From Fonticula alba ATCC 38817 (lineage: Eukaryota; Protista; Nucleariida), in the NCBI GenBank assembly GCA_000388065.2, contig KB932207.1: a stretch of 64,000 bases of DNA; one strand, given 5' to 3'. This document shows positions 41 through 64,000 of this stretch, piece by piece. The translations under genes were made by a program, and so were the position numbers. Position 1 is the stretch's first letter. Every line of letters begins with the position of its first letter. The notes beneath the pieces were generated by a model. The model had not been told where the DNA came from and searched no databases. It worked only from the letters and a program-made list of their open reading frames with translations.

Positions 41-3000
41 ATCACCCCCCCGCAGGGCGAGCCCTTCAAGGTCCATGTGTCGCTTTTCCTGACCGTGGCC
101 TCCGGCATGCTCAATCGCACCAAGGCCGCCACGGAGGAATTCATGAATGCCGCCCTGCCGGTCCTCTTCGCCGGGCTCAATTCCCCGAGTGCCGACTTCC
201 AGATCGCCAGCCACCTCATTCTGTCGCAGCTGTTTGGCGGCTCGCAGGTGGCCCAGGAGACCACCCGCGTGGTGACGGCTCTCCTTTGCACCAAGACCAC
301 CGACCGGACGGCGGCCTCCGCGCTGCCGGTCCTGGCGCTCATCTGCCACAACAGCCCGACCGTGGTCTTCGAGCCGGAGCACCTCAGCGGCCTGATGGCC
401 CTGTCCGGGCTTGGGGCCCGGTTGGCCGAGGTCAGCGCCATGGGCATCGCCCACGGCCTGATCAAGGGCTTCCTCGGCTCCTGCACCGTCCACCTGTGCG
501 TGTTCGCTTCCTTTGTATTTTGCGCTGCCCCCCCCCCCCCCCCTCCCTCCCCGAGTTGAGGCTGCCCCATTCTCACCCCTGTCCCGTTTGTCACTCGGTC
601 TTCGAACACACGTGCATGCGCATGCGTGTCTGTGCGCGCACATGCGCCCACGCAGCCACCGCGAGGGTGTGCCCGAGGTGTGCCTCCAGTTCCTGGAGGC
701 CGTGCCGCTCACCTGCGCCGAGCTGGTGGCCTCCACCACGGTGGCCCTGTTCGAGCGTGTGGTCGATGTGCTGGCGGACCAGGACATGGACGCGGCCGCC
801 GCGGCCGCCAGCCAGCCGACCATGCTGGCCATCCTGCGCCTGCTGAGCACCCGCTACCCGGATGCGGTGGACTCCTGCATGGTGCACTTCTCGGCCACCC
901 TGACCGAGAAGCGCAAGGCCCTGGTCTTCCAGGTGTTCAAGGGTGTCTTCGATGGGTCGCGGCACCAGCCGCTCGGGGACAACTCCTCCTCGCTGCTGCT
1001 GACGCTGAACCACCCGAGCGATGGGATCCGCGAGCAGGCCATTCGCGAGCTGGCCGACGCCATCGCCACCCCGGCGGCCAACCATGCCTACATCGCGGCC
1101 ACGGCCCTCGGCAAGCTGTACGACTCGCACCCGCCGGTGGTCGAGGCGGCCCTGGATATCCTGGCCCGCAAGGAGATCCTCCCCCATGTGGAGGCCGACC
1201 AGCTGCAGAGCTACCTGTGGACGGTGCTGGTGACTGGGCGCGACGCTGACGACCAGCCGGTCCGCCTGCCGGCCGGCATCTTCCCCCTGGTGGCCGCCAT
1301 GTCGCACCATCAGCCGGGCCTGCTGGCCGATGTGCTGCCGGTCCTGCTGGCGGCTCTGACCGGTGACATGCGCCTGGATGTGGCGGCGGCCCTGCCGGCC
1401 TTGGCTTCGGCCGCGTGTCCTCTGCTGGCCGGGCTGGCCAAGGTGCCGGTGTCTGCCGGGAGTGCCCGGCCGGCGGTCGGCGCGGCGGTGGCCACGGCGG
1501 TGGCCACGCGTCTGCCGGAATCCACCCTCACCGGGCTGATCGGCGCCCTGCCCGACTTGCAGGATCTGACGGCCCCGGCCGCCGGGCTGATCGGCCTGGC
1601 TTTGGTGTCTGGACAGCCCGAGGCCCGCGATGATGCGGCCTTCTTCGTGCAGACCGAGCAGCTGCTGGCCGCGCTTGGGCGTGTGCCGGCTGCGGTGGCC
1701 GCCGCGGTGGCCGCCCCGGCGGTGGTTTCGGCCGACACCGCCCTCGAAAGTGCCCTCGAGGCGGCGCTGGCCCTGCCGGAGGCCACGGCTCGCACGCAGG
1801 CCGCCCTGCAGGGGCTTCTGCTGGCGCTGGTCCGGTCGTCGGCCCGGCGTCGGGCTCCGCTGGCCCTGCTCCAGGCCGGCCTGGCCCAGCAGCCGTATCA
1901 CGCCCTGCTCCTGTCCCTCTTCTCGACTTTGGCTCCGTTGGCGGCGGCGGCCGGGTCGGCCAGCTTCGCGGCCGACCTGCTGGTCCTGCTGCTGGCCGAG
2001 CACTTGGACCACGCGCCGCTGGGCTTCCTGGCTGGGGTGATTGTGGCCCCGCCGGCTGCCCTGCCGGCGTCCACCGTGGTGGCGGCCCTGCGCCTGTTGC
2101 AGGTGGTCATCGCCACGCAGGAGGCCCATCGTGACCTGGGTGCCCTGGGCCCGGTGTTGCTGGTGCCGCTGGTGCACCCGTCCGGGGCGGTGCGCTCGGC
2201 GGCGGTCGATTGCCTGGCCGCCCTGCAGGAGGTCCAGGCTGCCCTGCCGAAGGCCGCGCACAAGGCCGCTCGTGGGGTTGTTGCCCGGCGTGGGAGTGGT
2301 GCGCGGTCGGCGGCCCCGGTGGCCGGCGCCGGCCCGGCCGTGGACCGGAGCCTGGTCCTGTGCTTCTCGGAGCTCTTCCCCACCACGACCGCCGGGCAGC
2401 CGGTCAGCGCCTTCCTCAGCACCAAGAAGTCCGCCAAGTTCCTGAAGGGCCTGCTGGACGCGCGCGCCGAGTTGGCCATGGATGCGTCGGCGCTGCCGGC
2501 GGTGCTCGGCGCCATGCTCAAGGCCCCGCGCAACAACTCCTTCAAGCTGAAGGTCATCAGCTTCCTGCTCGGGGCCTCCGGGGCCCTGGCGGAGCCCTTC
2601 TTCCAGGCGACCCTGCTCCGGGTGCTGGGCAGTGTGGACGCGGCTTTCAAGCTGCCGCACCTGGTGGCCGGGCTGGCCAGTTTGGAGGCACGCCTGCCGG
2701 CCCTGGCCAGCCTGTCGGAGCCCGCGGCCTCGGCCCTGGCCCGCGAGCTTTTCGGCTGCCTGCATAGCGCGGCCCTGCGCCAGTTGAAGGAGGACCAGCG
2801 TGTGGCGGTGGCCGAGGCGCTGTTGGGCTTCCTGGCTCCGCAGAAGGAGGAGGAGGCGGAGGCGGAGGCCGCCGGCCCCAGCACCGGGGTCCGGCTGGTT
2901 TTGCTGGAGGCCGTGTCCAAGGACTTCTTCCTGCACCACCCGGCGGCCTATGGGCAGCGCCTGTTCCAGCAGGTCATCCGGCTGCTGACGTCCACCAAGG

Positions 3001-6000
3001 ACAGCCGTCTGGCGGCCGGCATCCGGGCCTTCTTCGGCCGGCTGAGCGATGTCAATGCCCAATTTGCCGAGGCCTTCCGCGGGTTGGCCGAGACGTATGG
3101 CGCGGCGGCCCGGCGCGTGGCCCAGCCCGAGGCGGCCGGTGCCCCTGCCACCGGGGGCGACTCCCAGCAGGAGCTCGACACGGTGGGCGCGCTGCTGATC
3201 GGCACGCTGGAGGCCTTCGAGCTGCGCCGGGTCATCCTGCCGAACAATGACCTGGTGACGCTGCTGTTTTCGCTGCTGGAGTCGGCCGTGCTGGCTGGCC
3301 CGTCCGTCGGTGGGGATTACCTTCGGCAGTTGCTGCTGTCCTCGCTGCTGTCCCTGTCGAATGCCTTCCAGTCGCTGGATCGCGCGTCGGCCGAGCGCCG
3401 GGCCGGGCAGACCGGCTTCCGCATGGATGTCCTGGTGGATTGCATCCGATCCAGCGACAATCCCCAGCTCCACCACTTGGCCCTGCTGCTGATGAGCTCC
3501 ATCGCGGCCATCTACCCGGAGAATGTCCTGTCCTCCATCATGCCGGTCTTCGCCTTCATGGGTGCCAATGTCCTGCGGCAGGATGACAACTACTCCTTCT
3601 TCGTCATCCAGCAGACCCTGCAGTTTGTCATCCCGCCGCTGGTGAAGAACTCCCCCTCGCTCGGGGGCGGCATCAATGTGGTTCCCATCAAGCCGGTGAT
3701 CAAGGTCTTCGTCGATGCGCTGGGCCACATTCCCAACCACCGCCGGGTGCGGCTGTTTGACATCCTGGCCAGCACCCTGGGCCAGGAGCAGTACCTGTAT
3801 GCCATCTTCGCGCTGCTGCTGGACAAGCTGAGCCAGAAGCCGGCCGGAAGTGCGGCTGGCGCCCCGCCGGCGGCCGATGCCGACTCGCTGCGGGAGTTCT
3901 GCGTGACGCTGAGCAACTCCTTCCAGCCGGAGGCCCAGCTGCAGGCGCTGCTGCAGCTGCTGCAGCTGGTCCTGTCCCTGCCGAATGATGTGCCGCGTGG
4001 TGGCGCGTCCGAGGGGCCGGCCAGCGGCGGGTCCTCCTCGGGCAGCTCGGCCGGCATCGATCGTGACCTGATGCTGGTGGACATTTATGGCATGCCGGCC
4101 CGGCAGCTGCGCATGTTCAAGTACGACACGATCCGCTTCATTTCCGAGGTCCTGGCCAGCCGGGCTTTCTTGCAGAAGTTTGTCAGCCGGTCGTCGCGCG
4201 GTGGTGCGGCGGCCGGGACGGCCGCCCCGGCCGCCGCCGGCGGTGCCTCCAACAGCCCCTTCGAGCAGCTGTTCATCTCCATCCTGGAGTCGCTGCTGAG
4301 TCTGGTCGATTCGCTTGGGGCCCACCTGGCCCGGCCGATGGAGGAGATCGGCGGCCCGGCCGCGGTCAAGGCCTTCCGCCACATCAATGCCCGGGTGTAT
4401 GATGTCATCAACCAGACCAACTCCCTGCTGTCGATTCCGTCCTTCTTGAATGTGGTGTCGCGCTTGCTGCAGCACCGGAGCAGCTCCCTGCGCCGGCGCA
4501 CGCTGCTGCTCTTCAACCAGCGCCTGCTGGATGACAGCCAGGAGAGCCACCGCCACAAGGACCTCTTCCTGTCGATGCTGGCCGATGTGACCGGGGTCAT
4601 TCGCGCCGGCGGGGCCGATGCCGATGCCGTGCTCAATGTCCAGAGTGCCCTGGTGTCGCTGGAGATCCTGATTCGGTTCTTCGCGGCCACCGAGGCGGCC
4701 ACCTTCCTGGAGGTGGTGCCGGTGGTCATCGCCGGGGTCAAGAGCACCAATGTCCAGGTGGCGGCCAACAGCCTGATTTGCTTGGCGTCCCTGTGCTCGC
4801 AGCTGAAGCAGCAGATCCTGCCCTTCCTGCCGCAGTTCATGAAGGACTTCCTGGGGCTCTTCCGCCAGTGGCTGGATTCCAAGGCCGCTCCGATGGCGGC
4901 CGGCGGGAGTGCGTCGGGCATCATCGGGTCCTCCGCCGAGGAGGGCGGCGCCGTGACCCCGGCCAGCATGAGTGCCGCGGTGGCCGAGCGCCAGCGCCGG
5001 AGCTCGCAGCAGTACTTCCTTCGGTCGGCCATCGCCCTGCTGGAGGATCTGCTGGTGCACCTACGACGCTCTTCCGATCTGAGCTCGCAGCAGTACTTCC
5101 TTCGGTCGGCCATCGCCCTGCTGGAGGATCTGCTGGTGCACCTGCCGCAATTCCTGTCGCCGTACATCGCCGACACGCTGGCCTGCTGCCTGGATCCGTA
5201 CATGCTGGCGCAGGTGGGCGACGCGTCGATCGGTGCCGGTGGTGCGTCGCTTTCCTCGAGTGGTGCCGACAGCTCGGAGCTGTTGATGAAGACCCGTCGG
5301 GTGCTGCAGCTCCTGGGGCAGAACCTGCCGCCGCGTGTGCTGCTTCCGGCGCTGAAGGGGTACTTCGAGCGCCAGGCCCCGGTGGCCGAGGAGGCCTCGC
5401 TGGTGGCCTTCTTCCACCTGTCGCGTGACATCGTCAGATCGGAAGAGCACACGTGATGAAGACCCGTCGGGTGCTGCAGCTCCTGGGGCAGAACCTGCCG
5501 CCGCGTGTGCTGCTTCCGGCGCTGAAGGGGTACTTCGAGCGCCAGGCCCCGGTGGCCGAGGAGGCCTCGCTGGTGGCCTTCTTCCACCTGTCGCGTGACA
5601 TCGTCGGGCATCTGAACCGCTCGGCCGTGGTCATGTTCAGCGAGGACTTCTTCGGGCTCTTCCTGGGCGCCGTGTCGTTGCGCGGTCGCAATGGCAAGGC
5701 CCCGGCCGCCCCGGCGACCGATCGCGTGGAGGCCGCCGCCGTGGACATGTACCTGGAGCTGGTGACGAAGATGAATGAGTCGATGTTCCGCCCGCAGCTG
5801 ATCAAGGTGCGCCCCCCTCGGCGGGCTCTTTTTTCTTTGCTTCTTTTGCTCTTTTGCTCTTTTGCTCTTTTGCTTTCGCCTCCATGTGCCGGTACTGAGA
5901 CGTGGTCTATGTCCCCTCCTCGCTCTCTCCCTCTCTCCCCGCCTCCCCCCTGGCTTGCAGTTTGTCGACTGGGCCAATGGCATTGAGCGGACCCCGGCCC

Positions 6001-9344: not shown

Positions 9345-11253
9345 ACACTCTAGGTGTACGTGGCAGAGCAGTGACGTACCCCAAGCGGGGGCTGGACCGG
9401 GGAAGAGCTGGCAGAGCCGGGCGTATGCGAGGTGCCCTGGTCTCCTCCGGGCGTTCGCTAGCCCCGCGCCGGGGGAGCATCCCGGTACAAGGCAACCCTC
9501 GCGCTGGGCCCCCCTTTTCGCGCTCGCCCCCCGCCCTGCGCCTGCGCCTCCCTGTGGCTCTCGGCCCCGTCTGTTCACCTGCGTCTGCTCCGGTATGGTG
9601 CCACGCATTGCCAGGGCGGCCGAGGGGGAAGGGGCATTTCTCGAGGCAGGCGCCGTTGCCGCCCGAGCTCGAGCCGCATGGGCCGCACACTTCATTTCTG
9701 GCGGCCCTTGCCCCCGCCCAGGCCCGGCCTGCTGGGGGGGGGGGGGGCGGGGCCAAATACGGGTCCGCACGTTGGAGCCTTACCCTACACTTGTGGGGAC
9801 CTCGTCGAGTGCTACGCCGCCTTGAGCGGCCCGCATCTCTCTCCCTCTCTTTCTCGCTCTCTCTCTCTCTCTCTCTCCCTTTCTCTTTCTCCCGACCCTA
9901 AATCCCCGCGCGCATTCGGCGGGGGCGGGCGGCGGGCGTGGGTCTCATCCCGGTGGGAGCGCGGGACCTTGTTGTTGTTGTTTTTTCCCCGGCTCGTCAG
10001 GGGGGGGCGGGGGGGNNNNNNNNNNNNNNNNNNNNNNNNNNNNNNNNNNNNNNNNNNNNNNNNNNNNNNNNNNNNNNNNNNNNNNNNNNNNNNNNNNNNN
10101 NNNNNNNNNNNNNNNNNNNNNNNNNNNNNNNNNNNNNNNNNNNNNNNNNNNNNNNNNNNNNNNNNNNNNNNNNNNNNNNNNNNNNNNNNNNNNNNNNNNN
10201 NNNNNNNNNNNNNNNNNNNNNNNNNNNNNNNNNNNNNNNNNNNNNNNNNNNNNNNNNNNNNNNNNNNNNNNNNNNNNNNNNNNNNNNNNNNNNNNNNNNN
10301 NNNNNNNNNNNNNNNNNNNNNNNNNNNNNNNNNNNNNNNNNNNNNNNNNNNNNNNNNNNNNNNNNNNNNNNNNNNNNNNNNNNNNNNNNNNNNNNNNNNN
10401 NNNNNNNNNNNNNNNNNNNNNNNNNNNNNNNNNNNNNNNNNNNNNNNNNNNNNNNNNNNNNNNNNCCCCCCCCCCCCCCCCCCCCGGCCGGCACCCTGGG
10501 GTCGTGCAAGTATCAATGTGCGGTGCGACTGGGGCTCTCGCCCGGGAGTCCTCTCGTGGCTGCCCGGCCCCCATGGCGGGGTCGTCGGCAAATGTCGCGA
10601 CCACCGAACGACCCCCCTGCCCCCCCCCCCCCCCACGGAGAACCCCCGGGGTCCGGGGGCCAGCTCGAGGCCGACATACGGCGGGCTGGCGCGCATACTG
10701 GCGGAGTGTACGTACTCTGATGACCGTTTTGGCGCATCTTCCCCTGGCGCGGAGGAGCCCGCCCCGGCGTCGATCGCCCTCGCCCCGGCGCCGCGCCTCG
10801 CCCGGTCGCGATTGCCGGAGCCCCGCTCGCGCGACTCGCCTCGCCTGCCAGGACCCAAAGAGCCACCCCGATACACCTGGCCGCCGTTCTGCCGCCAGCC
10901 CCGCTGCAGTCCCCCCCCCCCCCCCCCCCCCCCGCCCTCTCGCCCTCCTTCATCCGCCAGTACATGCCCCCGCCCGCTTTTACCCCGCCCGCCTTGCCCT
11001 TGCTTGCTTTTGCTCTTGCCCTCCCCATGGCCGCTGTTCTGTTCTGCTCCATTATGTCGCCTTTCCTCGCGCCTCTCGTCCATTCCGCCCTCATGCCTCG
11101 ACCCGATCTCTCCTCCCCTCATCCCCCGCCCCTCATCCCCCGCCCCCTCGTCCCCCGCCCCCTCATCCCCCGTCCCACACACCTCCCCTTCTCACACACC
11201 TCCCCTTCTCACACCTCGCTCCCGACCACCACCCTGGCCTCGATAGAGCCACG

Positions 11254-11564
11254 ATGAAGCGCTTTTTTACCTTCCGCCGTAAAAAGGACAAGTCCAAGAG
11301 CGTCGAGGTCGATCGCGACGCCTTCAACGCCCCGGCGGCCACCGGGGCCGGCGGCTCGCCCACCTCCGCTCCGGCCACCGCGCCTCAAACCCCCACCACG
11401 CCAACCAGTGGCCACGGCAATGAGACCATCCTGCCGCCGGCTTCCGCCGACCACACGCTCCTCCCTCCGGCCGGTGGTGCGGCCCACTCCGCCAACCAGG
11501 ACACCCTCCTGCCGCCGGCCGGCGCCCCGGGTGGTGGCTACCAACAGCACCCACCGCCCCATGG

Positions 11565-11603
<39 letters not shown>

Positions 11604-12653
11604 CCACCACCACCAGCAGCAGCAGCAGCAGCAGCAGTACCACCACCACCAGCAGCAGCAGCAGCACCACGCGGCCGGCAACAACCCCTACGCTATGAAC
11701 AACGGCCACACGCTGGTCGGCGCGCAGCAGGGCGACGCATCGTATGCCAACCCGGCGGCCGGTGTCAACTCGACGCTCGTTTCCCCGCACGGCGGTGTCA
11801 CCTACCACGCGCACCCGGGCAATGTCAACATGACCCTGGTCGGTGGCCCGGGCGTGCCGGGCGGCGGCATGCCGATGGACTCGCATGCCACGCTGATTGG
11901 CGGCCCGCCGGCGCCTGGCTGCGATCCCAACTCCACTCTCATTGCCGGCGGGGGCCCCGCTCCGGGGATGATGATGGCCGGCCGGCCGGCCCCGGCCCCG
12001 GTGCTGGTCCCGCACCTGCGCCTGCTCCCCTCGAGCGAGTACTACCCGGTGCTGGACATCGACGTCACGCGCACCATCAAGCTCGGCCGCACGGACCCCA
12101 ACAACACGGACCCGGACTTCGTGCCCTTCAACAGCAAGGTCATCTCTCGCCGCCATGCGGAGATCTGGGTCGTCAACAACGAGTTCTACATCCGCGACAC
12201 CAAGTCCCAGTCCGGCACCTTCCTCAATGGCACTCGCCTCAGTCTCCCGGGCGAGGAGTCTCGTCCGTGGAAGCTCAAGAACAACGACGTCATCCAGCTT
12301 GGTGTCGATCGTCGTGGGACCACCACCGGTGCGTGCCGCCCTTCTTTTTTTTTTCTTCTTGCCTCTCCCGGGGGGGGGGGGCCCCTTTCGCTCGCACGCT
12401 CTCCCTCCCTCCCTCCCCCCCTTCCTTCGCCCTCATCGAATTGGCCTACAACACTCCCCTCTCCTCCCGCGCCCCGGTTTTCTGACACTCTCCACATCCG
12501 GTAGACTCGTTGCGCTGCTTCTACGCCTCGGTCGAGCTCTCCTTCCGCAATACGGCTGCCGATGCCGGCGCGCCGGTTGTCCACCCTGGCATGTACGCCA
12601 TGCCGATGGCCCAGCCGCACGCGCCCGATCCCAATGCCACTCTCATTGCTTGA
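11254..12653 (+). CDS. FHA-domain protein (Dma1/Vps64/SLMAP-type FHA, no RING) with a Q/H-rich disordered N-terminal arm, about 407 aa
   Basis: ATG at 11254. Exons 11254-12328 and 12505-12653 (GTGCGT...TAG, phase 1; total 1224 nt). FHA motifs 'IKLGR', 'FNSKVISRRHAEIW', 'YIRDTKSQSGTFLNG' and 'LKNNDVIQLGVD', followed after splicing by 'DSLRCFYASVELS', matching the post-FHA strand of this subfamily. Confidence 0.85.
11566..11670 (+). repeat. Coding (CAG)n/(CAC)n tract encoding polyQ-YHHH blocks
   Basis: Encodes QQQQQQQQQQQQYHHHQQQQQQQQYHHHQQQQQHH within the FHA protein. Confidence 0.95.
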
Positions 12654-12875
12654 GAAGGGGGCCGGAGCATGCCGCCGTTCCTGCCAGCCATTTTTGTGCA
12701 TGTGTGTCTGTATGCGCATGTGCATGCGCGTGCGCTTTCTCCCTCTCACTGTGCGCGCGCTCGCACCCCCCCCCTCTCTCCCCCCTGTCTATCTCTCCTG
12801 CACTGTGTCGCTTTCTCTCTTCCCCTCTTCCCGTCCTTGTCAGCGCTCCTTCTCTCCTCTTGCGCGCCCACATGC

Positions 12876-12911
<36 letters not shown>

Positions 12912-14319
12912 TAGCATGTATGTCCGCGCACGGGCCGGGACACGCATGTCCAAAAGTGCCTTTGGTGAGCATGCCTTTTGCTGCCACCATGACAAGGAGG
13001 AGCGGCGGTGTGTAGAGCAAGTGGATTTCTCGCCTTGAGTCTTTGCCGAGCCGTCGAGAAACGCAAACGTACACACAGCCGCAGGGTCCCCTCCCCGTGG
13101 AAGGGCGTGGTGGGGAGGGGGGGGGGGGGGGGCAAAGCATGGGAGCAAATCAAACACCCATGCCTCTGCACCAGTTTCCGGATCCCCGCAATCGTCGGGG
13201 CCCACGCGCGCCGGTCCCCCTTGTGTACGGCGGCGGGCGTCTCTCGGGCGCGAACAGCCGGCCGCATAGCCCGCCTGTGTCGGATCCCCGCTCCGTCCAC
13301 CTGGTCCCGGCTCGCCTTTTCTTGCGCGAGCCGAAAAAACGGACGCCCAGGCGGCGGCAGTTCTCCTCGCCGGCTCAGGGAGCGCGCGCGCGCGCGTGAA
13401 CGACTCATCACATGCCCAGACACACCAGCCCGGGTTACGCCCGGGGCTTGTGCTCTCCGTGCGGGATGTTATCTTGCCCGGAGCTTCCAGCCGGTCGGCG
13501 CGTGCGCATGCGCGGGCACGGGTGCCGCGCGAGAGAGAGACGGGGACCTACACTCGCCCACCGCCCGCCCCCCCCCCCCCCAGGGCGGCCGGAGCACACG
13601 GGCTGAGAGGCCACCCTGCCTGTGCCCCCGCCCCCCGCGCCGCCCCCCTCTCGTCAGGGGGCCGAGGCGGGTTTGTGTCGGGACGCGGTCACAGGTCGGG
13701 TGCGTGCGTTCGGCCGGGGCTGGCCGGTGCGCGGCCCCCCTCGTCAGCGTCCCTGCCTCCCCGGGGCACCCCTTCTGCCGCGAGGAACGTGTCTGCCAAG
13801 TCGGAGGGGGGGGGGGGGGGGGGCGGGGGCGGGGCCATGCGATGTCAGGACAGACGGGGTGGGGGCCATTTGAGCGTCGGCGTGCCGTGACACGGTGGGG
13901 CGTGTCTTTCGCTGCTTGGCCGGCTTCCCTATCTCCCCCTCTCTCAGGTTCTCGAGCCTCGCGTGTTTCCGCGTCCACGGGCGTTTGTGAGTGTATCCTT
14001 GTGTTGTCGGCCGAGAACGACGGTCAGCCAAGCGACCGTCTGGTGGCGCGGCCAGTGTACGCGAACATGCGTGTCCCCATGTGCTGTGGGAGGCGGCCTT
14101 CAACCACCTCACAACACGGCGGGCGGTCCCCTTCCCCTGAGAGGGGGCCACCGGGCGTGGCTGAGGACGCCCGAGCAAGCGCTGGCGAGTCATGACCGGG
14201 CGCGAGAGGGACAACGCGAGACGCGGCTCTCCTGACCCCCTTGCTCATCGTCTCCTGGAGAACGTGGGCCGTGGATAGGGGGTCTCTGTCTCTGTCTCTG
14301 TCTTTGTTTGTGTCTCTCG

Positions 14320-14350
<31 letters not shown>

Positions 14351-15115
14351 ACCGTCCCTCTCTTTGTCCGCCCCTCGACCCTTCGCTGGCGCTGCCTGTC
14401 TTACCGGCGCGAAGCCGCGCGTTTCAGGCCGGCTGCTCTCCAAACTCCCCGACCCGATAGTCGGCAGCTGATCGACCAATTCGCTGGGGGGTAGGGTCTA
14501 GGCCCGCTGGGCGATCGGGCATGCAGCCGGCGCCCGGCCCCCCCCCCCCCCCCCTGCCTGTGTGTGGGACTGTGCGCGCGCATGTGTGCAGGGGCGTGTG
14601 CTCGCCGGGCTGTGTGCGTGTGCGCGTCCTCTGTCGGGCGGGTGCGCTTTCGATCTGCCCGTGTGACAGACAAGTTCGCCGGGGGAGGACTGTCGTGATG
14701 TGCGTGCGTGTGCACGTCAGCGTGAGACCGCAGGCGTACTTCTGCTCGGCTGCCTCCCCGGGCCAAGTGCAGGCCCTCGCATCATGCCTCTCCCCTGCGA
14801 GGGTGCGTGTGGGTGGAGGGGGATGGCTTCCACTCTCTGGCGCCGCTTGTCGCGCAACTCGCTACGCTCGCCGGACCGCCGAGGGAGCGGAGCATCGAAG
14901 GGGATGCACACCGCCAGGTCAGGACATGCCGGGAGTAGACCAAACCTCTTGCCCCGCCCTGCCTCGCCCGAATCGCTCGTCGGGTATGACACCCTGCGCC
15001 TGTTCTTGCCCTTGTCCCCGTCCTCCCTCCCTGCGTGCCTGTTGTCTCCTCGTCTGACCCCCCTGCCCCCTCCCCCTTCGCCCGTCCCGAAGCTCAAACG
15101 ATACACCCTCCCACC

Positions 15116-17004
<1,889 letters not shown>

Positions 17005-17711: not shown

Positions 17712-20700
17712 TCACTGTAGCGACTCCCGGAAGAAAGTGGTCACATAGGCTTCGTATGCCTCCGGAGCGGCCACTGCCAGGACCGGATGCTCGGTGCAGT
17801 GACCGCGCACCTTGGTCACCGTGTGATCGGATGCTCGGCTGCGTGTTCCACCGCCCCCGCCGCCGGTGACATACGACAGCAGGGACCGGCCGAGGCCCAC
17901 CAAAAATGACGGCTCGCCCGGGGCCTCACCCGCGCCGGTGGGTGCTTCCCCTCCCACCGGCCCGGGGCCTGGGTGTTTCTGCCCCGGTGAGGGGGCGGCC
18001 TCCATTGTGCGGTCCGGCCCCTCGGCGGCCGGATCGCTGCCTGCCATGCTGCCAGCCGCGGAGGACCCCTGGTCATGGCCGCTCCCCGGGCCGGGCGGCG
18101 AGGCGGTACTGCCGCCGGGTCCAGCCTGGCCCCCCCCACGGCCCGACGACGCGGCGGCCACCTGGAAGATGTGCGCCGGGGTCACCTCCGGCCGGAGGGC
18201 GTGGCGCTGGTCGACATTGTCCGGATCGAACCAGGAGAAGTCCCGCGGGTCCATGTCCAGCCGGAAGGTGGTCGTGTCGAGCGGCTGCGTGGCGGGGATG
18301 ACAACCGGCCCGGTTCCCGGGGCCGACTCCACGCTGCGTGGCTGCTTGGTGGCCGTCGCCATGGCCGGCTTCTCCCCCGGGGGGACTCCCTTCGGCCGCG
18401 GGCGTTGTTGGGCATCCTCCACGCGGCTGGCATCGGCCCCGATGCCACCGGAGAGGGCATCCGGCGGGCTGGGGTCGGCGCGCGCCGCGAGGAGATCATG
18501 CTCGGCGCGGGCCCACGCATGCTCGGCAGCCGTCATGGACGATCCATAGGCCGCGGCATCGATGGTGGAGATGTACCACTCGCGCACGCGGAAGCCGGCG
18601 ATGCGCCCGGTACTGGCGAGGAGGCGCCCCTGTCGGACCGGCACCACCTCATCGTCAATGGAGTGTGCCACGGCCAGCTGCCGGTCCAATAGAGCACCGG
18701 CCAGCCCCGGGGCCGAGGGCTCCGGCAGCGACCACACATATTGCCCGGTGCTGCTCCGGAGGACGACCAGCCCCGGCGAGGACCCGGTCGAGTCCCGGCG
18801 ATGGAGCTGCCGCGCATGGTCCAGGTCCACGGCGTTGCCATCGGCCCGGGTGGAAATCCCAGGGATGCGAAGCTGCCAGCCGGGCGGCATGCTCGGCCGG
18901 GCCGCCGGGCCGCCGGCCGAGGGCAGCTCGGCGGTCACGCGCACCTGCTGCCCGGGCACCGGTGCGGTCGGCATGGCCGGGTCGCCGCCGCCGCCGCCGC
19001 CGCCGGGTCCCGGCCCGGCCGAGTTCAAGGGCAGGCTGCCGAACATCTCATCCGCCGGACGTGCCCAATTCAAGTCCACCTGGCGGCGCACGCCGCGCAC
19101 AATGTCCCTGGCATAGGCCCAGCTGAGGCCGATGAAGAAGCCGCCCGACACATTGCCCACGTTGAAGGCCGTTCGCAGGACATTCCGCGGGCTGAACACC
19201 CCGGAGTCCATGAATACCGCGCGGATTTGGGGCATCTTACCCATGGCGATGGCCACGGTGGACGCGCCGGCCGACACGCCCCAGAGGCCGATGTGCTCCG
19301 GGCGAATGCCCCGCTCGCGGACCAGGTAGTCCACGGCTCCAACATGGTCCAGGTACTCCGAGGCGCCCCAGTGGAAGTGCCGCTTGGACCCGCGCAGGCG
19401 CCCGCTGGTGCCCATGTTCCGCGCGTCGACCAGCAGCACGCTGAAGCCGGCCCGCCACAGGAGGAAGGCCGGCTGCAGGACGCTCGGGGTCCGCCGGGAC
19501 GAGGCGAACCCATGCTGCATGATGATCACCCGCTCCATGCCGTCCGGGAAGGCGGCCTGTGTCCGGGCGGCCTCGGCCACCGTGGCCGTCATGTATGTTT
19601 GGTTGCTGGCCTGGATCCAGTTGCCGGGGCCCGGGGCACCGGCCTGGTCGGGCCCCCCGGGCACTGTGACCTCCTGGCAGCCATCCTCCAGGCGACAGGG
19701 CACCGAGGCCGGCTCATGCACGTACTGCCATCCGCCCGGGCCGTAGCGCCAGACATAGGACCAGGTCTCGCTGCTCTCGAGGTTTTCCTCCTCCTCCATC
19801 TCATACTCGTATTCGTAGTAATAGTAGATATACTCATCGCCGCCGTCGTCGTCGTCGTCGTCGTCATCATCATCTTCAAGATCATACTCCTCTTCGTATT
19901 CCGCGTCCTCGTCATCGTAGTCATCGTCATCGTAGTCCTCGTCATCGTAATCCTCGTCCTCGTCCTCGTCGAAGTCGTCGTCCTCGTCGAAGTCGTCGTC
20001 CTCGTCGAAGTCGTCGTCCTCGTCATCGAAATCCTCGTCGAACTCCTTGTCGAACTCCTCGTCAAACTTGTCGAACTCCTTGTCGAATTCATCCTCAATG
20101 TCCAGGAAGAAGGGGTCCACCTTGCGAGGTTCACTCTGCGGCGCCGCCGCGCTGGGGAGGGCCCCTCCACCAGGGGAAGACTCCAGCGGCTCGGATTTGA
20201 CACTTGGCCGGGGCGGCAGCCCTGTCGTCGATTCCTCTGCACCTGGGGAGATGGCCCCGGATTCGCCCGCAGGGGCAGCAACCGCCCCGGAGCCGGCTTC
20301 CGCCACACTCCCATTCTTGGGCTTCTCCTCGTCCACAATCTCCCGTGAGGTGGGCAAGTCAGCTGCCGAGCTCCCGGCTCCGGGAGCCGCCTGCCCCAGC
20401 GGGTCGCGGTGCATGCTGCCATTTGATTGGTCAAGGGGCTCGGCGGCACTCCCTTGGGCGGCCCTCTCTGGCTCAGTGGGCGCCGGGGCCTGCGTGGCGG
20501 CCGCCGTCGGGGCCTGTGTGGCGGCCGCCGTCGGGGCCTGTGTGGCCTCTACTGTCGGGGCCTGCGTGGCCTCTACTGTCGGGGCCTGCGTGGCCTCTAC
20601 TGTCGGGGCCTGCGTGGCTGCCGGCGTGGGGATGGCAGTTGGTGCCTGCGTCGCCAAGGGTTCAGCAGGTGTCCTCGGGGTCGGGCGCAATGGGCGCCGA

Positions 20701-22515
20701 GGGCCGGAGGGAGGCGAGTCACGGCCCCGGCGCCAGCGACCGCGACTCGTCAGAGGCCCCTCCACGGTGGCCCAAGTGTCGGCGCCAGAATCAACCTTGG
20801 CCGAGGCACCCTCCTGGCGAAGCAGCCACTCGGGCAGCGGCACTCGCGCCGGGCCGGAGGACTGTCGCACGTCCGAGCGTCTCCGGTCCGGGGCCTGGGA
20901 GGCCGGCTGCTCCGGGCCCCGGGCCTGGACAAGCATTTCGTGGACCGATGCATCGACCGTGACCACGCGCCGGCGAGGATGGGCGTGGGGCTTGCCGTCA
21001 GCCGGGCCGGCCTCCGGGCGCCAGCGCCGGCGCAGGACCATTCCCTCGGTGGCCGCGCCGCGCTTCGACCGCTGGGCCTCGGTGGGGGCCGCCTCATGGC
21101 GCCTGGCGTGGCTGCTTTCGCGCAGGATGTCCCGCTCGGCGAAGCCCGGCGCGCGAATGTACCACGCGCGGATCTCGATCAAGTCCTCCGCCGTGGGGAA
21201 GGACACGGTCTCAATGCGTGCCGACCGGGGGAATTGATACGGCTGCAGGGCGGAAACCCGGTCGTAGCGCGTGCAGCCGCTGTCTTCCAGTCGGTAGGAG
21301 GTCGGCTCATTCAGCGGGTAGACATTGTGCCGGGCCCAGGTGAAGACCCCGGCGGCTGGGGCACCGGTGGCATAAGGTCAGTTGGCAGGCTCGGTGGTCG
21401 GGCATCGGGGCGGGGCGAGGGGGCGAGGGGGGGNNNNNNNNNNNNNNNNNNNNNNNNNNNNNNNNNNNNNNNNNNNNNNNNNNNNNNNNNNNNNNNNNNN
21501 NNNNNNNNNNNNNNNNNNNNNNNNNNNNNNNNGGCAGTCGTGGACGCGGGGCAGAAAGGCCGGCAAGAATACCGCAGGCGGAGGCCATGCCAATGGGCAA
21601 GGCTCGCCACTTGCCAGCCATCGCGCGAGGGTGTCGGGAACACGCACCGGCTGCGCAAATGATGGCATAGACGATGACCAAGAACGTCCAGCAAGCCAGC
21701 AGGATGAGCGCCACATAGATGAGAACCTTCCACCAGGTGATGGGTCTCCGGAAGACCGAGGCAATGCCGGACCCGATGGCTGGCAGGGGGCACCGCGTGC
21801 GCAGGGCAAAATGATGGGAGGGGGGGGGGGGGACGGGGCGGGACAGTTCACGTGGAACAGTCAGCGCACGGGAAGGGGGGGAGCAGGTGCCAGATGCTCC
21901 CTTGTCAAACCATTGCAAGCGCAAACACACACACACACACACATCGCCTGCTGGGCGACAGGGCTTCAAGGGTGGGCAAGCCCAGATGCACGTACTTCGG
22001 AAGAAGCCACGGCGCTTGGCCGGGGCCACGGAGATGACGGAGGCCGCTGGCGACCCTATCGCGCCACGGGCCGCGGCCGGGCCCTCGCCGGCGGGACGCA
22101 CCGAGACGTCCCCCGGATCGACGGCGGCCACGCCGACCTGGGACTCGGGATCAAGAGGGCCGGTCCCCGGCGGCGGGGCCCCATATGGCCCGGGGGTGCT
22201 TGGACGCGAGGGCAGCGCGAGCCCCGGCGGGCCCGGGTCACCCCGGTCATGCACATTCACCGGGTAAAGGGAGTAGGCTTCCGCACGGCGTGGCCCGGTG
22301 GGCGTGCCAGTCAAGTGGGGGTAGATCGGCTGCCGAGGATAGCCCCGGGGGTCATACTCCTGATTCAGCTGCTGCGGTTGCTGTGTTTGCCGGGGCTGCT
22401 GTGACTGCTGCGACTGCTGCGACTGCTGCGGCTGCTGCGGCTGCTGCGGCTGCTGCGGCTGCTGCGGCTGCTGCGGCTGCTGCGGCTGTTGTTGATGGTG
22501 ATGGTGGTGGTACAT
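17712..22515 (-). CDS. Membrane-anchored alpha/beta-hydrolase with very large low-complexity insertions, about 1431 aa
   Basis: Exons 22515-21996, 21779-21648 and 21355-17712 (both introns phase 1; total 4296 nt). TM helix 'WWKVLIYVALILLACWTFLVIVYAIICA'. Core motifs 'VSFPT..IEIRAWYI', 'IIMQHGF', 'AGFSVLLVDARNMGTSG', 'WGASEYLDHVGAVDYL', nucleophile elbow 'GLWGVSAGAS', acid 'AHSIDDEVVP' and a C-terminal His region 'GHCTEH...YEAYVTTFF'. Confidence 0.85.
19780..20112 (-). repeat. Coding Asp/Glu-rich low-complexity tract with periodic Phe then Tyr
   Basis: Encodes FFLDIEDEFDKEFDKFDEEFDKEFDEDFDDEDDDFDEDDDF...EDYDDEDYDDDDY...DEYIYYYYEYEYEMEEEE inside the hydrolase. Confidence 0.95.
20485..20654 (-). 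repeat. 24-bp coding minisatellite encoding ATQAPT(VE/AA)
   Basis: Plus-strand unit GGGGCCTGCGTGGCCTCTACTGTC and variants. Seven ATQAP copies, six of them in tandem. Confidence 0.95.
22371..22494 (-). repeat. 9-bp coding repeat encoding (QQP)n/(QQS)n at the hydrolase N-terminus
   Basis: Plus-strand (CTGCTGCGG)n, translating to QQPQQPQQP...QQSQQSQQS. Confidence 0.93.
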
Positions 22516-25378: not shown

Positions 25379-26297
25379 TCACTTGATGTTGATCTTCTCG
25401 TGGGCACCGTGGATCTTGTGGGAGGAGGTCCCGTCGGTGGCGGTCTCGCCGAGGGACCCCCGGCGGGCGGACTTCGGCGAGTGGGGCCCGGCCTCGTCGG
25501 TGGCGCCGCGCTTGAGCATGTTCATGCCGGCCTCCATCCACATGGTGATCTTGGTGGTCAGGGTGTTGTCCCAGATCTCGGCGGTCTGGGCCTCGACACG
25601 CAGCAGGCACAGCTCCGGCGACTCCTTGCCCTTGGGGAAGAAGGCGTCCCAAGCGTGGGTGTAGAACTCGTCGATCTTCTGGCGGTCCTTGTTGATGATG
25701 GCCTTGCCGCTGATGGAGATGAAGGAGCTGCTGCTCTGGAAGGAGACGCTCACGTGCGGGTCGAACTCGATGTCGGAGCACTGCAAGATGGGCCGGCGTG
25801 TGCGAGAGTCCCATTGTGCGTGTGCGTGTGCGTGTGCGTGTGCGTGTGCGTGTGCGTGTGCCAGAGGAGGGAGAGGTGAGTATGCGGCGAGCAGCCCCCC
25901 CTGCCAGGCAAAGAAAGGATCATCCATGCTGGNNNNNNNNNNGCAGCCCCCCCTGCCAGGCAAAGAAAGGATCATCCATGCTGGTCGGGGGGGGGGGGGG
26001 GGGGGGACGATCGCCCACATCTCAGCACAGGGGGGGGGGGGGGGACCCACTTTTGGCACGCACCTTGCTCGAATCGCAGGACATGGCAAACCAGACGTCG
26101 CCGTTGTCATCGACATGGGCCACGGCCATCGGACGGGTGCGGAGGCCGCTGTCGGCCCGACGCGTGGTCAGCATGGCGTTGTGGAAGCCGCGCATGTTCT
26201 CAACAAGCTTCTTGACCTTCTCCGCGTGCTGCTTGTCGCCATGCGCGGAGTCCATCATGCGGCTCTGGTCCTTGGAGCTGGGGGCAACGGAACCCAT
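25379..26297 (-). CDS. General stress protein 26 (YdaG)/Bli-3-like, pyridoxamine 5'-phosphate oxidase-like FMN-binding split barrel, about 211 aa
   Basis: Exons 26297-26064 and 25780-25379 (phase 0). Motifs 'AMLTTRRADSGLRTRPMAV', 'GDVWFAMSCDSSK|CSDIEFDPHVSVSF', 'FISISGKA', 'AWDAFFPKGKESPELCLLRVEAQTAEIWD'. Confidence 0.88.
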
Positions 26298-30193: not shown

Positions 30194-31635
30194 CGCGATG
30201 TGCGGGAAGGGGGGGGGGAAGGGGGCGAAAAGCAGGAGGGGGAAAGGGGGAGGGGGGGGGGGGGAGAGGCGCTGAGGGCACAGTTGTCCAGGGCCCGACG
30301 GGACATGGCCGCCGGCCGGGGAGGCACTTCAATCTGCCCGGAGACGTGTGGGGAATCGAACCCTCCCGGGCCCCGGCGAGCCGGCATCTGGCGGACCGCA
30401 CAGCCCGGCACATGGTGGCGGGCACAGACACCCCTCGGCGTCCGGCCCCGGGGCACATGCTGCGCACCCATCAGGACTCCCGGCGCGAGGGGCCGCCGGG
30501 CCGGGCCGCTTGCCTGGCGGGTCAGCCTCCCTCGGACGCGTGTGCCCGCGTCGCCGCAACCACGGGCGGGCGGGCGGGCGGGAGGGGTGGCAGGGGGGGG
30601 AGGGGGGTAGCTTCGGCGGTGGCAGTGGCGGCGCGCCCCGCTGCTCAGATCAAAATGGCATTCCTCCTCTACTCCCGACGCGCCGTGGGCAGCTGACGTG
30701 CCCACTGTCTGGCCGAGTCAGTTACCCACCCTGCCCGTTGGTGTCGGCCGGGGCAGGCGAGGCGCAGAGGCGCAGGCACGGCGGGGGTGGGCGGGCTAAT
30801 GGGCCGCCCCTGGGGCCCGGTGCCCGCCCGAAGGGGGGGGGGGGGGATAAAAAAGCCTGGAGCAGGACCCGGGCACGCCGCCCGGGGGCGGTGTGCGCGG
30901 GGGGGAGGAGGAGGGCTGAAGTGAAACATTGCTCCCCCCCCCCCCCCCCNNNNNNNNNNNNNNNNNNNNNNNNNNNNNNNNNNNNNNNNNNNNNNNNNNN
31001 NNNNNNNNNNNNNNNNNNNNNNNNNNNNNNNNNNNNNNNNNNNNNNNNNNNNNNNNNNNNNNNNNNNNNNNNNNNNNNNNNNNNNNNNNNNNNNNNNNNN
31101 NNNNNNNNNNNNNNNNNNNNNNNNNNNNNNNNNNNNNNNNNNNNNNNNNNNNNNNNNNNNNNNNNNNNNNNNNNNNNNNNNNNNNNNNNNNNNNNNNNNN
31201 NNNNNNNNNNNNNNNNNNNNNNNNNNNNNNNNNNNNNNNNNNNNNNNNNNNNNNNNNNNNNNNNNNNNNNNNNNNNNNNNNNNNNNNNNNNNNNNNNNNN
31301 NNNCCGGTGCGTGCTCATCATTCCCCCCCCCCCCCTCCCTCCCTCTCCCCCCGCCGCGTTTCCGCCGTGCCTGCTCCCAGGCTTCCCCTCCCTGCCCCGA
31401 GCGCTTCTCTATCACGCCCACGCCCACGCCCACGCCCGCAGCTTCTCCTCCCCCCCCCCCGCCCTCCTCCCCCAATCCCCCGCTCCCTCGCGTCCGCGCT
31501 CCGCTGCCCACCGAGACCGAGTGAGAGACCGCCGCGCGCTCGCGCCCTTCTCCGCCTGCTCGTGCCCACATATCGCGCCTGCTGCCCCGGCCGCCGCTGC
31601 CGCCGCCGCCGCTGTGCGCTCCCCTCCTCGCTGCC

Positions 31636-36424: not shown

Positions 36425-37720
36425 TCGGGGGGATGCCGACGGGCTGCGCGCTGTGGCTTGGCCAACAGCCGCTTTGGCCTTGGTGGCCCGCAGCGGTCCG
36501 GAGCTACATCGGTGAGTGGACAGACGAGCGGCCGGCAGGGCGAAGAAAGGTGTGAAGGGGCAACAAGGTCAGCGGAGGACGGGGGGGGGAACCGGCCAGG
36601 GCACAGAGGTGATGGATTGGCGTGGTCGGCGGGCGAGAGCACGGACCCGCTCATGGGGAGGGAGGGGGGGCGGGACGTGGTAGACCGGCGAAGGAGGGGG
36701 CGAGGAAGATGGATGGGCGGATGGAGCTGGGGTGGGAAACAGCTCCAAAGTGGGTGACAATTGGGGGATGGGCGCACCCACAGGGTGCCAGGCAGATCGC
36801 ACTTATCCTCTGTGTGTGTGTGTGTGAGCGCCCAGGCGAGCATACTCGGCCGCTCCAAACACGCAGGCCCGCCCGCCGGGCAGGGGGCAATCGGCTGGGC
36901 CTGGCTGGCCTGTACTGTCCCCCCCNNNNNNNNNNNNNNNNNNNNNNNNNNNNNNNNNNNNNNNNNNNNNNNNNNNNNNNNNNNNNNNNNNNNNNNNNNN
37001 NNNNNNNNNNNNNNNNNNNNNNNNNNNNNNNNNNNNNNNNNNNNNNNNNNNNNNNNNNNNNNNNNNNNNNNNNNNNNNNNNNNNNNNNNNNNNNNNNNNN
37101 NNNNNNNNNNNNNNNNNNNNNNNNNNNNNNNNNNNNNNNNNNNNNNNNNNNNNNNNNNNNNNNNNNNNNNNNNNNNNNNNNNNNNNNNNNNNNNNNNNNN
37201 NNNNNNNNNNNNNNNNNNNNNNNNNNNNNNNNNNNNNNNNNNNNNNNNNNNNNNNNNNNNNNNNNNNNNNNNNNNNNNNNNNNNNNNNNNNNNNNNNNNN
37301 NNNNNNNNNNNNNNNNNNNNNNNNNNNNNNNNNNNNNNNNNNNNNNNNNNNNNNNNNNNNNNNNNNNNNNNNNNNNNNNNNNNNNNNNNNNNNNNNNNNN
37401 NNNNNNNNNNNNNNNNNNNNNNNNNNNNNNNNNNNNNNNNNNNNNNNNNNNNNNNNNNNNNNNNNNNNNNNNNNNNNNNNNNNNNNNNNNNNNNNNNNNN
37501 NNNNNNNNNNNNNNNNNNNNNNNNNNNNNNNNNNNNNNNNNNNNNNNNNNNNNNNNNNNNNNNNNNNNNNNNNNNNNNNNNNNNNNNNNNNNNNNNNNNN
37601 NNNNNNNNNNNNNNNNNNNNNNNNNNNNNNNNNNGGGACAGCAGGGGAGAAGGAGAAGAAGAGGCAGAAGGAAGGCGACAAATGCCACAACAAAGATCGG
37701 CCTCCGGTCGCGCGGCGCAC

Positions 37721-63077: not shown

Positions 63078-64000
63078 GAAGAAGCCGGGCCGGGGACAGG
63101 GGGATGCACCACCGTTCGGCGGCGGTGCAACGAGGCTCACATGCCAATTCTCAGCTGGGCATGCCGACGATGGGTTTGTCGGGGTGACGCTCCGCATCGG
63201 CCTGCTGCCGCGGTGACCGTGGCCGCCGCCACTGCCATCGGGTGCCGCGGAACCCGATGCCCGGCTGCCCTCGCTCGCCCGAGAGAGCGGCTTGTCGGGG
63301 GCAGGCCGGGGGAGGAGGGCATTGTCTAAGCGCGCGCGCGCCCACGCACAAGGTTGGCGCCCACAATCTCGACCCGGAGCGTGTGCGAGCCTCGGCGGTG
63401 GCGAACATTCCGCGCGTTGGTGCGTGCGCGCGCATGTACGCGCGTGGCGTCTGCGGGTGTGGATGCACGCGCGCCAGACGCCTGAGGAGGTGTGGCGTGC
63501 GGGTGGCCGTGTCGCCACCTGCCCGTCGGGGAGAGGCGCCTTATGTGCGAGCCGGGGCCGGGCGTCGTCCGCCTGCTGTTTGTCGCCGCCTCCTCTCCCC
63601 GGGCAGGTGGAGGCCGGGGGGCGGGGGTGAGGGGGGTCGGGCGTCGTCTGGGTGGGACCCCCGCGCACACGCGCGCGCGCGCGCGCGCGGGCTCCACGCT
63701 TCCCCGCCCCCAGGGGGATCGGACGCAAAAGGCTGCGTGTGCCGTGCGGCAGAGGACGCCCCGCCAGCAGCTCTGGACTGGCGGGGCCTCGCGCGCCTTT
63801 GCATGCGNNNNNNNNNNGGGGGGGCGGGCGGAGGCTGTGACTTCCTGGTACTCGGCGAACGCCCGGACGAGTTGCCACCGCGCTCTCTGTCCAGGGTCGC
63901 GGGTCGTCCCACGCCGGCCGGCGAGAATTCATTTAACGCCTCTCGGGAAACGCCCTTCCAAGTAGCAGGGCCGTTTCTCGGAGCACACGGCCCATTGGTG

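Follow-up and report, generated by a model that had tools for sequence, protein, structure and literature searches.

A Fonticula alba FHA protein and its relatives carry repeated threonine motifs that may serve as ligands of their own FHA domain

In a 64-kb window of the Fonticula alba ATCC 38817 genome (64,000 nucleotides (nt) of contig KB932207.1, referred to here as the window), a gene of two exons on the plus strand (11254-12328 and 12505-12653) is predicted to encode a protein of 407 residues, in which a single FHA domain is accompanied by nine copies of a short threonine motif, eight in the arm before the domain and one at the very C-terminus. Sequence comparison places this gene in a conserved, unnamed and previously undescribed family, whose members pair the same type of FHA domain with arrays of the same motif. 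The gene, the motif and the family, taken together, are put forward with high confidence. A further proposal, more tentative and given a little under an even chance, is that the motif threonines become phosphorylated and that the FHA domain of the same protein reads them, which would make the arrays self-ligands.

The gene model is supported by transcript data from 11666 onward. Exon 1 is an open frame starting at an ATG with A at -3, and it encodes 358 residues and the first base of codon 359; a GT donor follows at 12329, and the AG acceptor at 12503-12504, which closes the 176-nt intron (12329-12504), restores the frame. Exon 2 has 49 codons, giving 48 more residues after the split Asp codon, and ends with TGA at 12651-12653. 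This splice had been proposed from the DNA letters and was borne out by a 1094-nt contig, present in RNA runs X1 and X2, that joins 11666-12327 to 12504-12878 with 0 differences and skips the intron exactly (12328-12503). These two runs, from two samples, were the ones examined among four small runs of 2012 from one study, in which 0.77-0.79 of the sampled words of 11690-12870 are present; the comparison was placed beside the CAG/CAC tract (11539-11670) and beside the (CA)n run after 12880. The contig retains the TGA and is colinear for at least 225 nt beyond the stop, up to 12878, with 28 nt further present, so that the 3' untranslated region (UTR) covers at least 12654-12878. Because the spliced contig keeps its stop codon, no RING, coiled-coil or transmembrane exon follows in that transcript, and a downstream exon adding a RING domain, which according to the original prediction would turn the protein into an ordinary Dma1, was not found. 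Homology also backs the splice, as exon 2 opens with (D)SLRCFYASVELSFRN, which lines up with 'KCVAMTIELSFRK', the final FHA strand in relatives. When seven full-length relatives were compared with the 64-kb window by tblastn, matches were obtained only at 11761-12363 and at the start of exon 2, with no further exon. Raw-read RNA runs X12 and X13, which bear another organism label, contained 0 matching reads, and the organism is not shown to be present in those runs. Protein searches were run with exon 1 (11254-12327) and exon 2 (12507-12650) as separate queries, and the protein collection searched held no annotated copy of the window's own protein among the matches.

Eight motifs of the form T-[LI]-[LVI] are found in the 255-residue arm that precedes the FHA domain, and the ninth constitutes the C-terminus. 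From the N-terminus onward, they are NETILP (11419-11436; Thr 58, codon 11425), DHTLLP (11449-11466; Thr 68, codon 11455), QDTLLP (11497-11514; Thr 84, codon 11503), GHTLVG (11704-11721; Thr 153, codon 11710), NSTLVS (11767-11784; Thr 174, codon 11773), NMTLVG (11827-11844; Thr 194, codon 11833), HATLIG (11884-11901; Thr 213, codon 11890), the copy nearest the FHA domain, (DP)NSTLIA (11929-11946; Thr 228, codon 11935), and finally NATLIA with the TGA stop (12633-12653; Thr codon 12639), all on the plus strand. The fifth of these shows no variation at Thr and Leu in the family alignment (A1). All nine Thr codons are where the original prediction had put them; its description of the eight arm copies as near-identical does not stand, as the array contains two types, T-[IL]-L-P-P (3 copies) and T-L-[VI]-[G/S/A] (6 copies). 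Shuffled versions of the arm hold 0.097 motifs on average against the 8 observed, a count that 0 of 20000 shuffles reach, and all Leu and Ile residues of the arm up to residue 230 fall inside motifs. A stricter pattern, [DN]-x-T-[LI]-[VI]-[GA], has three matches in the six frames of the 64-kb window, all of them in this gene. Since codons, flanks and spacing vary from one copy to the next, a recent tandem duplication within the window was rejected as their source, and the differing codons indicate that the motif is kept at the protein level. The arm is interrupted, between motifs 3 and 4 as had been noticed at the outset, by a polyglutamine/YHHH low-complexity tract (residues 96-139; 11539-11670), which is not in the closest relatives and is thus a lineage-specific insertion.

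The FHA domain is the sole Pfam domain of the protein (PF00498, residues 276-350, E 1.6e-15, 57.7 bits against a gathering cut-off of 20.7). According to Pfam and to an alignment with SLMAP, its first part extends over residues 249-358 (11998-12328) and its last strand, described above, is encoded by the beginning of exon 2 (12505-12551). A short disordered tail with no Pfam match (12552-12632) leads to the C-terminal motif; altogether, just 33 residues follow the domain, with Ala, Pro, Met and Gly abundant among them. Among solved structures, the FHA domain of human SLMAP (6ar0, E 3.5e-14) is the closest, and yeast Vps64/Far9 (6a8w) comes after it. In SLMAP, the phosphate and the peptide are held by R32, S52, R53 and H55 (PMC5663475). 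The corresponding residues of the window protein, R279 (12088), S298 (12145), R299 (12148) and H301 (12154), are invariant in the family, and G278-R279, S298-R299-x-H301 and S320-G321-T322 vary little or not at all across 33 sequences. Judged by these residues, the phosphothreonine (pThr) pocket is intact, and peptide binding is predicted. Outside this core, SLMAP S75 is replaced by Gln in the family, and the +3 contact V109 of SLMAP by Arg in the window protein and by Tyr in most relatives. An AlphaFold2 model of relative P0001, made with a 33-row alignment, contains an 11-strand sandwich (residues 58-188, predicted local distance difference test (pLDDT) above 90) between disordered arms, and Foldseek searches with this model returned the SLMAP FHA domain first, in its apo and pMST2-bound forms (6ar0 and 6ar2, E about 4e-10, 34-35% identity), and then Far9. 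In sequence comparisons, Dma1 scores higher against the domain (about 100 bits) than SLMAP does (56 bits). The early assignment to a Dma1/SLMAP type was therefore sound, SLMAP 6ar0 being the best solved match and fungal Dma1 the nearest named sequences.

The family was assembled by two kinds of search. A word-based protein search gave nine close matches from metagenomes and metatranscriptomes (41-61% identity), all with strings such as DPNATLIG, DANATLVG or DENATLVG before the FHA domain and SDLTLI near the C-terminus, and a profile search added further members, including the NCBI hypothetical protein MIR68_002712 of the aphelid Amoeboaphelidium protococcarum. Members thus come from Fonticula alba, this aphelid and roughly two dozen uncultured eukaryotes, and the relatives are all either unnamed or called 'hypothetical protein'. 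The counts that follow concern 24 relatives (P0001-P0009, P0121-P0134 and P0171) and the window protein. The window protein is 50-59% identical to P0001, P0002 and P0125. Look-alikes of P0005 sought in the ESM Atlas gave no usable match.

Across these proteins the motif can be written as D(-4)-x-[N/D](-2)-[A/S](-1)-T-L-[V/I]-[G/A]-G, and it occurs in arrays on both sides of the FHA domain, with 2-13 copies per protein. Altogether, 131 instances were collected, 123 of them in unique contexts; position -2 is N in 53 of these contexts, D in 30 and E in 8, position +1 is L in 106 and I in 17, position +2 is V in 75 and I in 31, and position +3 is G in 57, A in 23 and P in 15. The motif reaches 1.41 copies per 100 residues in P0001-P0009, compared with 0.013 in 111 other FHA matches, which are mostly fungal Dma1-type FHA-RING proteins, a difference of about 100-fold. 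The retention of several motifs by orthologues, named at the start as a test of the idea, is therefore seen in about 25 relatives. At the centre of the motif Thr outnumbers Ser by 95 to 3, while the arms hold about equal amounts of Ser and Thr, a bias that agrees with the selectivity of FHA domains for pThr alone. The earlier account of the motif was right about the nine sites; it overlooked the PH-bearing relatives, the Asn or Asp at -2, the Gly at +3 and a copy whose position is fixed. The divergent relative P0131 has five QTIVGG copies (T-I-V-G-G with Gln at -1) in place of N-A-T-L-V-G, and the Ser-Arg-x-His of its FHA domain is unchanged, so co-variation of motif and pocket is not apparent.

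The copy of fixed position is the one proximal to the FHA domain. In 19 of the 24 rows measured, it is located 78-89 residues before the 'IRD' core of the domain, with P0001 and P0005 counted among the 19 after correction by hand (88 and 91 residues before the core; the script had taken the first FHA strand); in the window protein the distance is 85 residues. Counted to the first FHA strand, it stands roughly 20-30 residues upstream, and about 20 in the window protein, where it reads DPNSTLIAGGG, with N226 invariant and T228 nearly invariant in alignment A1. A motif at or near the C-terminus is found in the window protein and in six close relatives, the latter having the form [S/T/N]-D-L-T-L-[IV]. 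Among 170-odd FHA matches, arrays of the Thr motif were found only with this one FHA clade. In a maximum-likelihood tree of 35 FHA domains, the 25 motif-bearing domains are split from 10 RING-bearing Dma1 domains with support of 100/99; the window protein belongs to a 9-row subclade (98/97), in which it stands next to P0001, and the aphelid-like proteins form a second subclade (97/99). The bootstrap was not fully settled and these support values are rough. The original view of the protein as standing alone, without RING, coiled coil or transmembrane anchor, agrees with this split and with the stop codon retained in the contig. Within the aphelid-like subclade only, a second conserved short motif, 'FSYNGPTLAVLPNR', is present between the PH domain and the Thr array (P0121-P0124, P0128 and P0132).

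How such arrays might work can be proposed from better known FHA proteins. In the complex of SLMAP with phosphorylated MST2, the peptide recognized is E/D-G-pT-M-x-R/K, whose -2 acid bonds R53 and whose +1 Met enters a hydrophobic pocket, and SLMAP reads several pT-M sites in the MST2 linker (PMC5663475). On the side of the kinase, the Polo consensus is [DEN]-x-[ST] with a hydrophobic +1, a preference that is shared by Mps1 (PMC10987667, PMC5807344). The Asn or Asp at -2 and the Leu at +1 of the family motif fit both the SLMAP FHA preference and the Polo/Mps1 consensus. It is proposed that a kinase favouring Asp or Asn at -2 and a hydrophobic residue at +1, with Polo/Mps1-type or GCK/MST-type enzymes as the candidates by fit, would phosphorylate the motif Thr, and that the FHA domain would then read [D/N]-x-pT-L. 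The proximal copy, about 20 residues before the domain (up to 30 in relatives), could act in cis, closing the protein in the manner of GarA/OdhI. The remaining copies, that at the C-terminus included, could act in trans, with a multivalent, phosphorylation-dependent self-assembly as the outcome, comparable to that of TIFA or of the SCD-FHA pair in Chk2/Rad53. Phosphorylated, self-read motifs are favoured because Thr prevails over Ser, the array accompanies a single FHA clade, one copy is fixed near the domain and another is placed at or near the C-terminus of the window protein and its closest relatives.

Several points weigh against this proposal. For every family member, phosphorylation of the motif is a prediction, and for the window gene the start codon and 5' end are likewise predicted, RNA support starting at 11666. 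Three of the window copies, those of the T-[IL]-L-P-P type, deviate from the family consensus. In the AlphaFold2 model of P0001 the motifs are disordered (pLDDT 48-60) and none is docked on the FHA domain, which is weak evidence because the modelled Thr is unphosphorylated. The conserved Val or Ile at +2 and Gly or Ala at +3 are not explained by the SLMAP complex, where Arg or Lys is preferred at +3. Moreover, the FHA domain is nearer in sequence to Dma1 than to SLMAP, and the Dma1 ligand in Sid4, pT275/pS278, is made by CK1 (PMC5584178), so that the rules drawn from SLMAP may not transfer.

Some of the same observations would suit a different assignment of the two parts, namely that the arrays serve another protein (a kinase, a phosphatase, another phospho-reader or a separate FHA protein) and that the FHA domain of the family reads other targets, the whole acting as an adaptor or decoy. 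This is regarded as possible, on the unlikely side. The motif by itself already meets the rules of the kinase consensus, the residues conserved at +2 and +3 lack an explanation in known FHA contacts, the AlphaFold2 model has no cis docking, and in MST2 a comparable pT-M array is read by the FHA domain of another protein and by MOB1, not by MST2 itself (PMC5663475). However, a purely trans ligand would not need one copy at a fixed distance from the FHA domain, and the arrays occurred only with this clade among the 170-odd FHA matches. A search with the FHA region of P0007, covering lengths up to 947 residues, also recovered only the family and Dma1-like proteins, with no kinase fusions. The more specific suggestion that the window protein is a decoy in STRIPAK or SIN signalling found no support, the kinship of the FHA domain being all that bears on either system.

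A second alternative dispenses with phosphorylation: the motifs would act as beta-strand 'stickers', by strand addition or cross-beta self-association, or through phospho-independent contacts with the FHA domain like those of GarA with its enzyme targets, and the beta-branched side chain would be the reason for keeping Thr. Strand formation is indeed favoured by Thr, Leu, Val and Ile, here followed by Gly, and the absence of Leu and Ile outside the motifs in the arm, as far as residue 230, would suit such a role. Phospho-independent FHA contacts are documented for GarA (Nott 2009, cited in PMC8546545), and the earlier statement that FHA domains bind only pThr is slightly too strong. However, a sticker would accept Val or Ile, yet the centre is strictly Thr with a conserved Asn or Asp at -2; no strand is modelled by AlphaFold2 at any motif, and the pThr pocket is fully conserved. 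Altogether, stickers are considered quite improbable.

Two other explanations fare much worse. The motifs could be N-x-T glycosylation sequons, or a functionless product of chance, low complexity or recent tandem duplication, as might be suggested by N-x-T in 53 of the 123 contexts and by tandem copies that are clearly recent in relatives P0002 and P0125. This is very improbable: the window copies vary in flanks, spacing and codons, the motif is common to two deep subclades, and none of the 20000 shuffles reached the observed count. On sequence grounds the sequon reading was rejected, as there is no signal peptide or transmembrane segment, FHA and PH are cytosolic or nuclear domains, and -2 is Asp instead of Asn in 30 contexts, a quarter of the copies. 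Finally, an orthologue of the usual Dma1 type (FHA-RING) or SLMAP type (FHA, coiled coil and tail anchor) with missed exons, which might be imagined from the similarity of the FHA domain to fungal Dma1 and SLMAP/Far9 and from an assembly gap at 10016-10465, is close to refuted by the TGA at 12651 in a spliced contig that runs on colinearly, by the tblastn search, by the separation of the clade from RING proteins at 100/99, and by roughly 25 clade members in none of which a RING, coiled coil or transmembrane segment is found.

If the self-ligand reading is carried further, the protein could be a stand-alone module of reader and marks, in which each chain would receive as many as a dozen [D/N]-x-pT-L-[V/I]-G marks from a mitotic or Hippo-type kinase, with closure in cis followed by a network or condensate in trans, held at membranes by a PH domain or by the basic N-terminus. 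This fuller picture is speculative and judged unlikely as a whole. Indirect support for action at a membrane comes from relatives, fifteen of which (N-terminal fragments counted) have an N-terminal PH domain that starts with K-Q-G-G-R-I-K-T-W-K-R-R-F-F-V-L and bears the signature K...K-x-R-F-F; on the basis of this domain a membrane or phosphoinositide link is plausible for the family. In the window protein a PH domain was detected neither by Pfam in exon 1 nor by tblastn with the seven relatives anywhere in the 64-kb window. P0125 and P0001 likewise have no PH domain but begin straight away with the motif region, and in both the start codon is preceded by in-frame stops, so the PH-less window protein is not an oddity of its gene model. 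The basic-aromatic N-terminus mentioned in the original prediction is present, MKRFFTFRRKKDKSKS (11254-11301, plus strand), and its residues 2-13, 'KRFFTFRRKKDK' (11257-11292), were aligned by MAFFT with a PH strand, 'WKRRFFVLDKKNK', of PH-bearing relatives. Possible readings of KRFFTFRRKKDK are a remnant of a PH domain since lost, a basic-hydrophobic patch that touches membranes, a nuclear localization signal (NLS) or a chance match. For the window protein, this N-terminus is the one feature that could point to action at a membrane, and it is equally NLS-like. The assembly gap, 800 nt upstream of the start codon, together with RNA cover that begins at 11666, makes a hidden upstream exon possible and leaves a small doubt.

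FHA proteins that bind their own pThr, such as TIFA, GarA and Chk2/Rad53, are textbook switches, each with one site or an SQ/TQ cluster. The presence of an FHA domain next to a cluster of Thr sites for one kinase is therefore already known; the family, its motif, the unusually high copy number and the sites on both sides of the domain are new. A literature search gave no paper linking Fonticula alba with FHA, and none of relevance with the strings DPNATL, NATLIG, NSTLVA or NATLVG. Near the base of fungi, where the family occurs (Fonticula and aphelids), a Dma1/SLMAP-type FHA domain is thus paired family-wide with up to 13 copies of a different and sharply defined Thr motif. If the motifs are FHA ligands, they would provide a peptide rule for Dma1-like FHA domains, the first for that branch, and a multivalent phospho-switch made by nature whose two simple parts could be used to reconstruct it, as well as a view of the pairing of pThr-hydrophobic sites with FHA domains (Hippo-STRIPAK and SIN) in unicellular relatives. 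The self-assembling module, if true, would represent a unicellular counterpart, related by descent of its logic, to the MST-linker/SLMAP pairing of animal Hippo-STRIPAK signalling, with ligand and reader fused in one protein. In these genomes, the motif can also serve as a pattern when trans ligands or the kinase responsible are sought.

The surroundings of the gene in the window were also recorded. A HEATR1/UTP10-like open reading frame (ORF) with HEAT repeats (513-5453, plus strand, E 1.6e-23), a class-III aminotransferase (14700-16091, plus strand, E 8e-41) and an ORF resembling S9 peptidases of the prolyl-oligopeptidase family (17712-21203, minus strand, E 2e-7) are nearby, and a functional link is suggested by none of these three neighbours. 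The presumed 5' UTR (10900-11253) is very C-rich, with about 25 C in a row and with 'CCCTCATCCCCCGCC' and 'CACACCTCCCCTTCTCACA' as recurring units, and a (CA)n microsatellite is found in the 3' flank (12880-12912). Besides the upstream gap at 10016-10465, eleven other runs of N mark assembly gaps, at 16385-16529, 21434-21532, 25933-25942, 30950-31303, 36926-37634, 42970-42979, 44557-44753, 46692-47557, 55553-56385, 57491-57556 and 63808-63817; GC content is 66-71% in the gap-free parts of the composition profile, and its low-GC bins are assembly gaps. The PH-FHA relatives P0009 and P0008 are encoded on compact contigs (L001, a 52-kb ENA metagenome scaffold, and L002-L004) in which genes were called without introns. 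The adjoining genes are of an ordinary housekeeping kind (an SPX transporter, ribosomal S14, an Atg4-like peptidase C54, PIG-A and a Pellino-like FHA-RING protein), in a gene order not shared with the window. Among the sequences outside the family, P0172, a Dma1-like protein of 725 residues, carries the source label 'putative sarcolemma associated protein', which is at odds with its architecture of FHA plus RING; its EukProt prefix 'Partr' presumably denotes a nucleariid relative of Fonticula.

Among known systems, the family resembles SLMAP, Far9(Vps64) and Csc1, of STRIPAK and SIP, in the sequence and fold of the FHA domain and in the pThr residues that correspond to R32, S52, R53 and H55. 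Like the family as proposed here, SLMAP recognizes repeated pT-hydrophobic sites, which have an acidic residue at -2 (PMC5663475). However, the window protein and its relatives are without the coiled coil or C-terminal tail anchor of SLMAP, Far9-Far10 and Csc1, and the array is in the reader's own chain instead of the MST2 kinase linker, with Gly or Ala rather than Arg or Lys at +3. As to the FHA-RING ubiquitin ligases of the Dma1/CHFR type, fungal Dma1 proteins are the nearest named relatives of the FHA domain (E about 1e-22, about 50% identity over the domain) and have in common with it an 'S-x-S-G-T-F-L-N' loop, whereas the window protein is without RING and in a separate clade, and Dma1-type matches are almost motif-free, at the density given above. 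TIFA is a small FHA adaptor whose N-terminal pT9 is bound by the FHA domain of another TIFA (PMC10865109), and this binding leads to oligomers or condensates (PMC10113258). A single site in another sequence context is present there, compared with 2-13 sites flanking both sides of the FHA domain in this family. In GarA/OdhI, an N-terminal pThr a few tens of residues before the FHA domain folds back and closes it (references in PMC8546545). The proximal copy, about 20-30 residues before the domain, has a similar geometry; GarA/OdhI proteins differ in being bacterial, in their ETTS motif and single site cluster, and in their low similarity (E 0.005; PDB matches 2kfu and 6i2p). Chk2, Rad53 and Cds1 place a cluster of consensus Thr sites for one kinase beside an FHA domain, and phosphorylation drives FHA-mediated association in trans. 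In those proteins, which are themselves kinases, the sites are [S/T]-Q for ATM/ATR, whereas here, in a protein with no catalytic domain, they take the form [D/N]-x-T-L-[V/I]-G.

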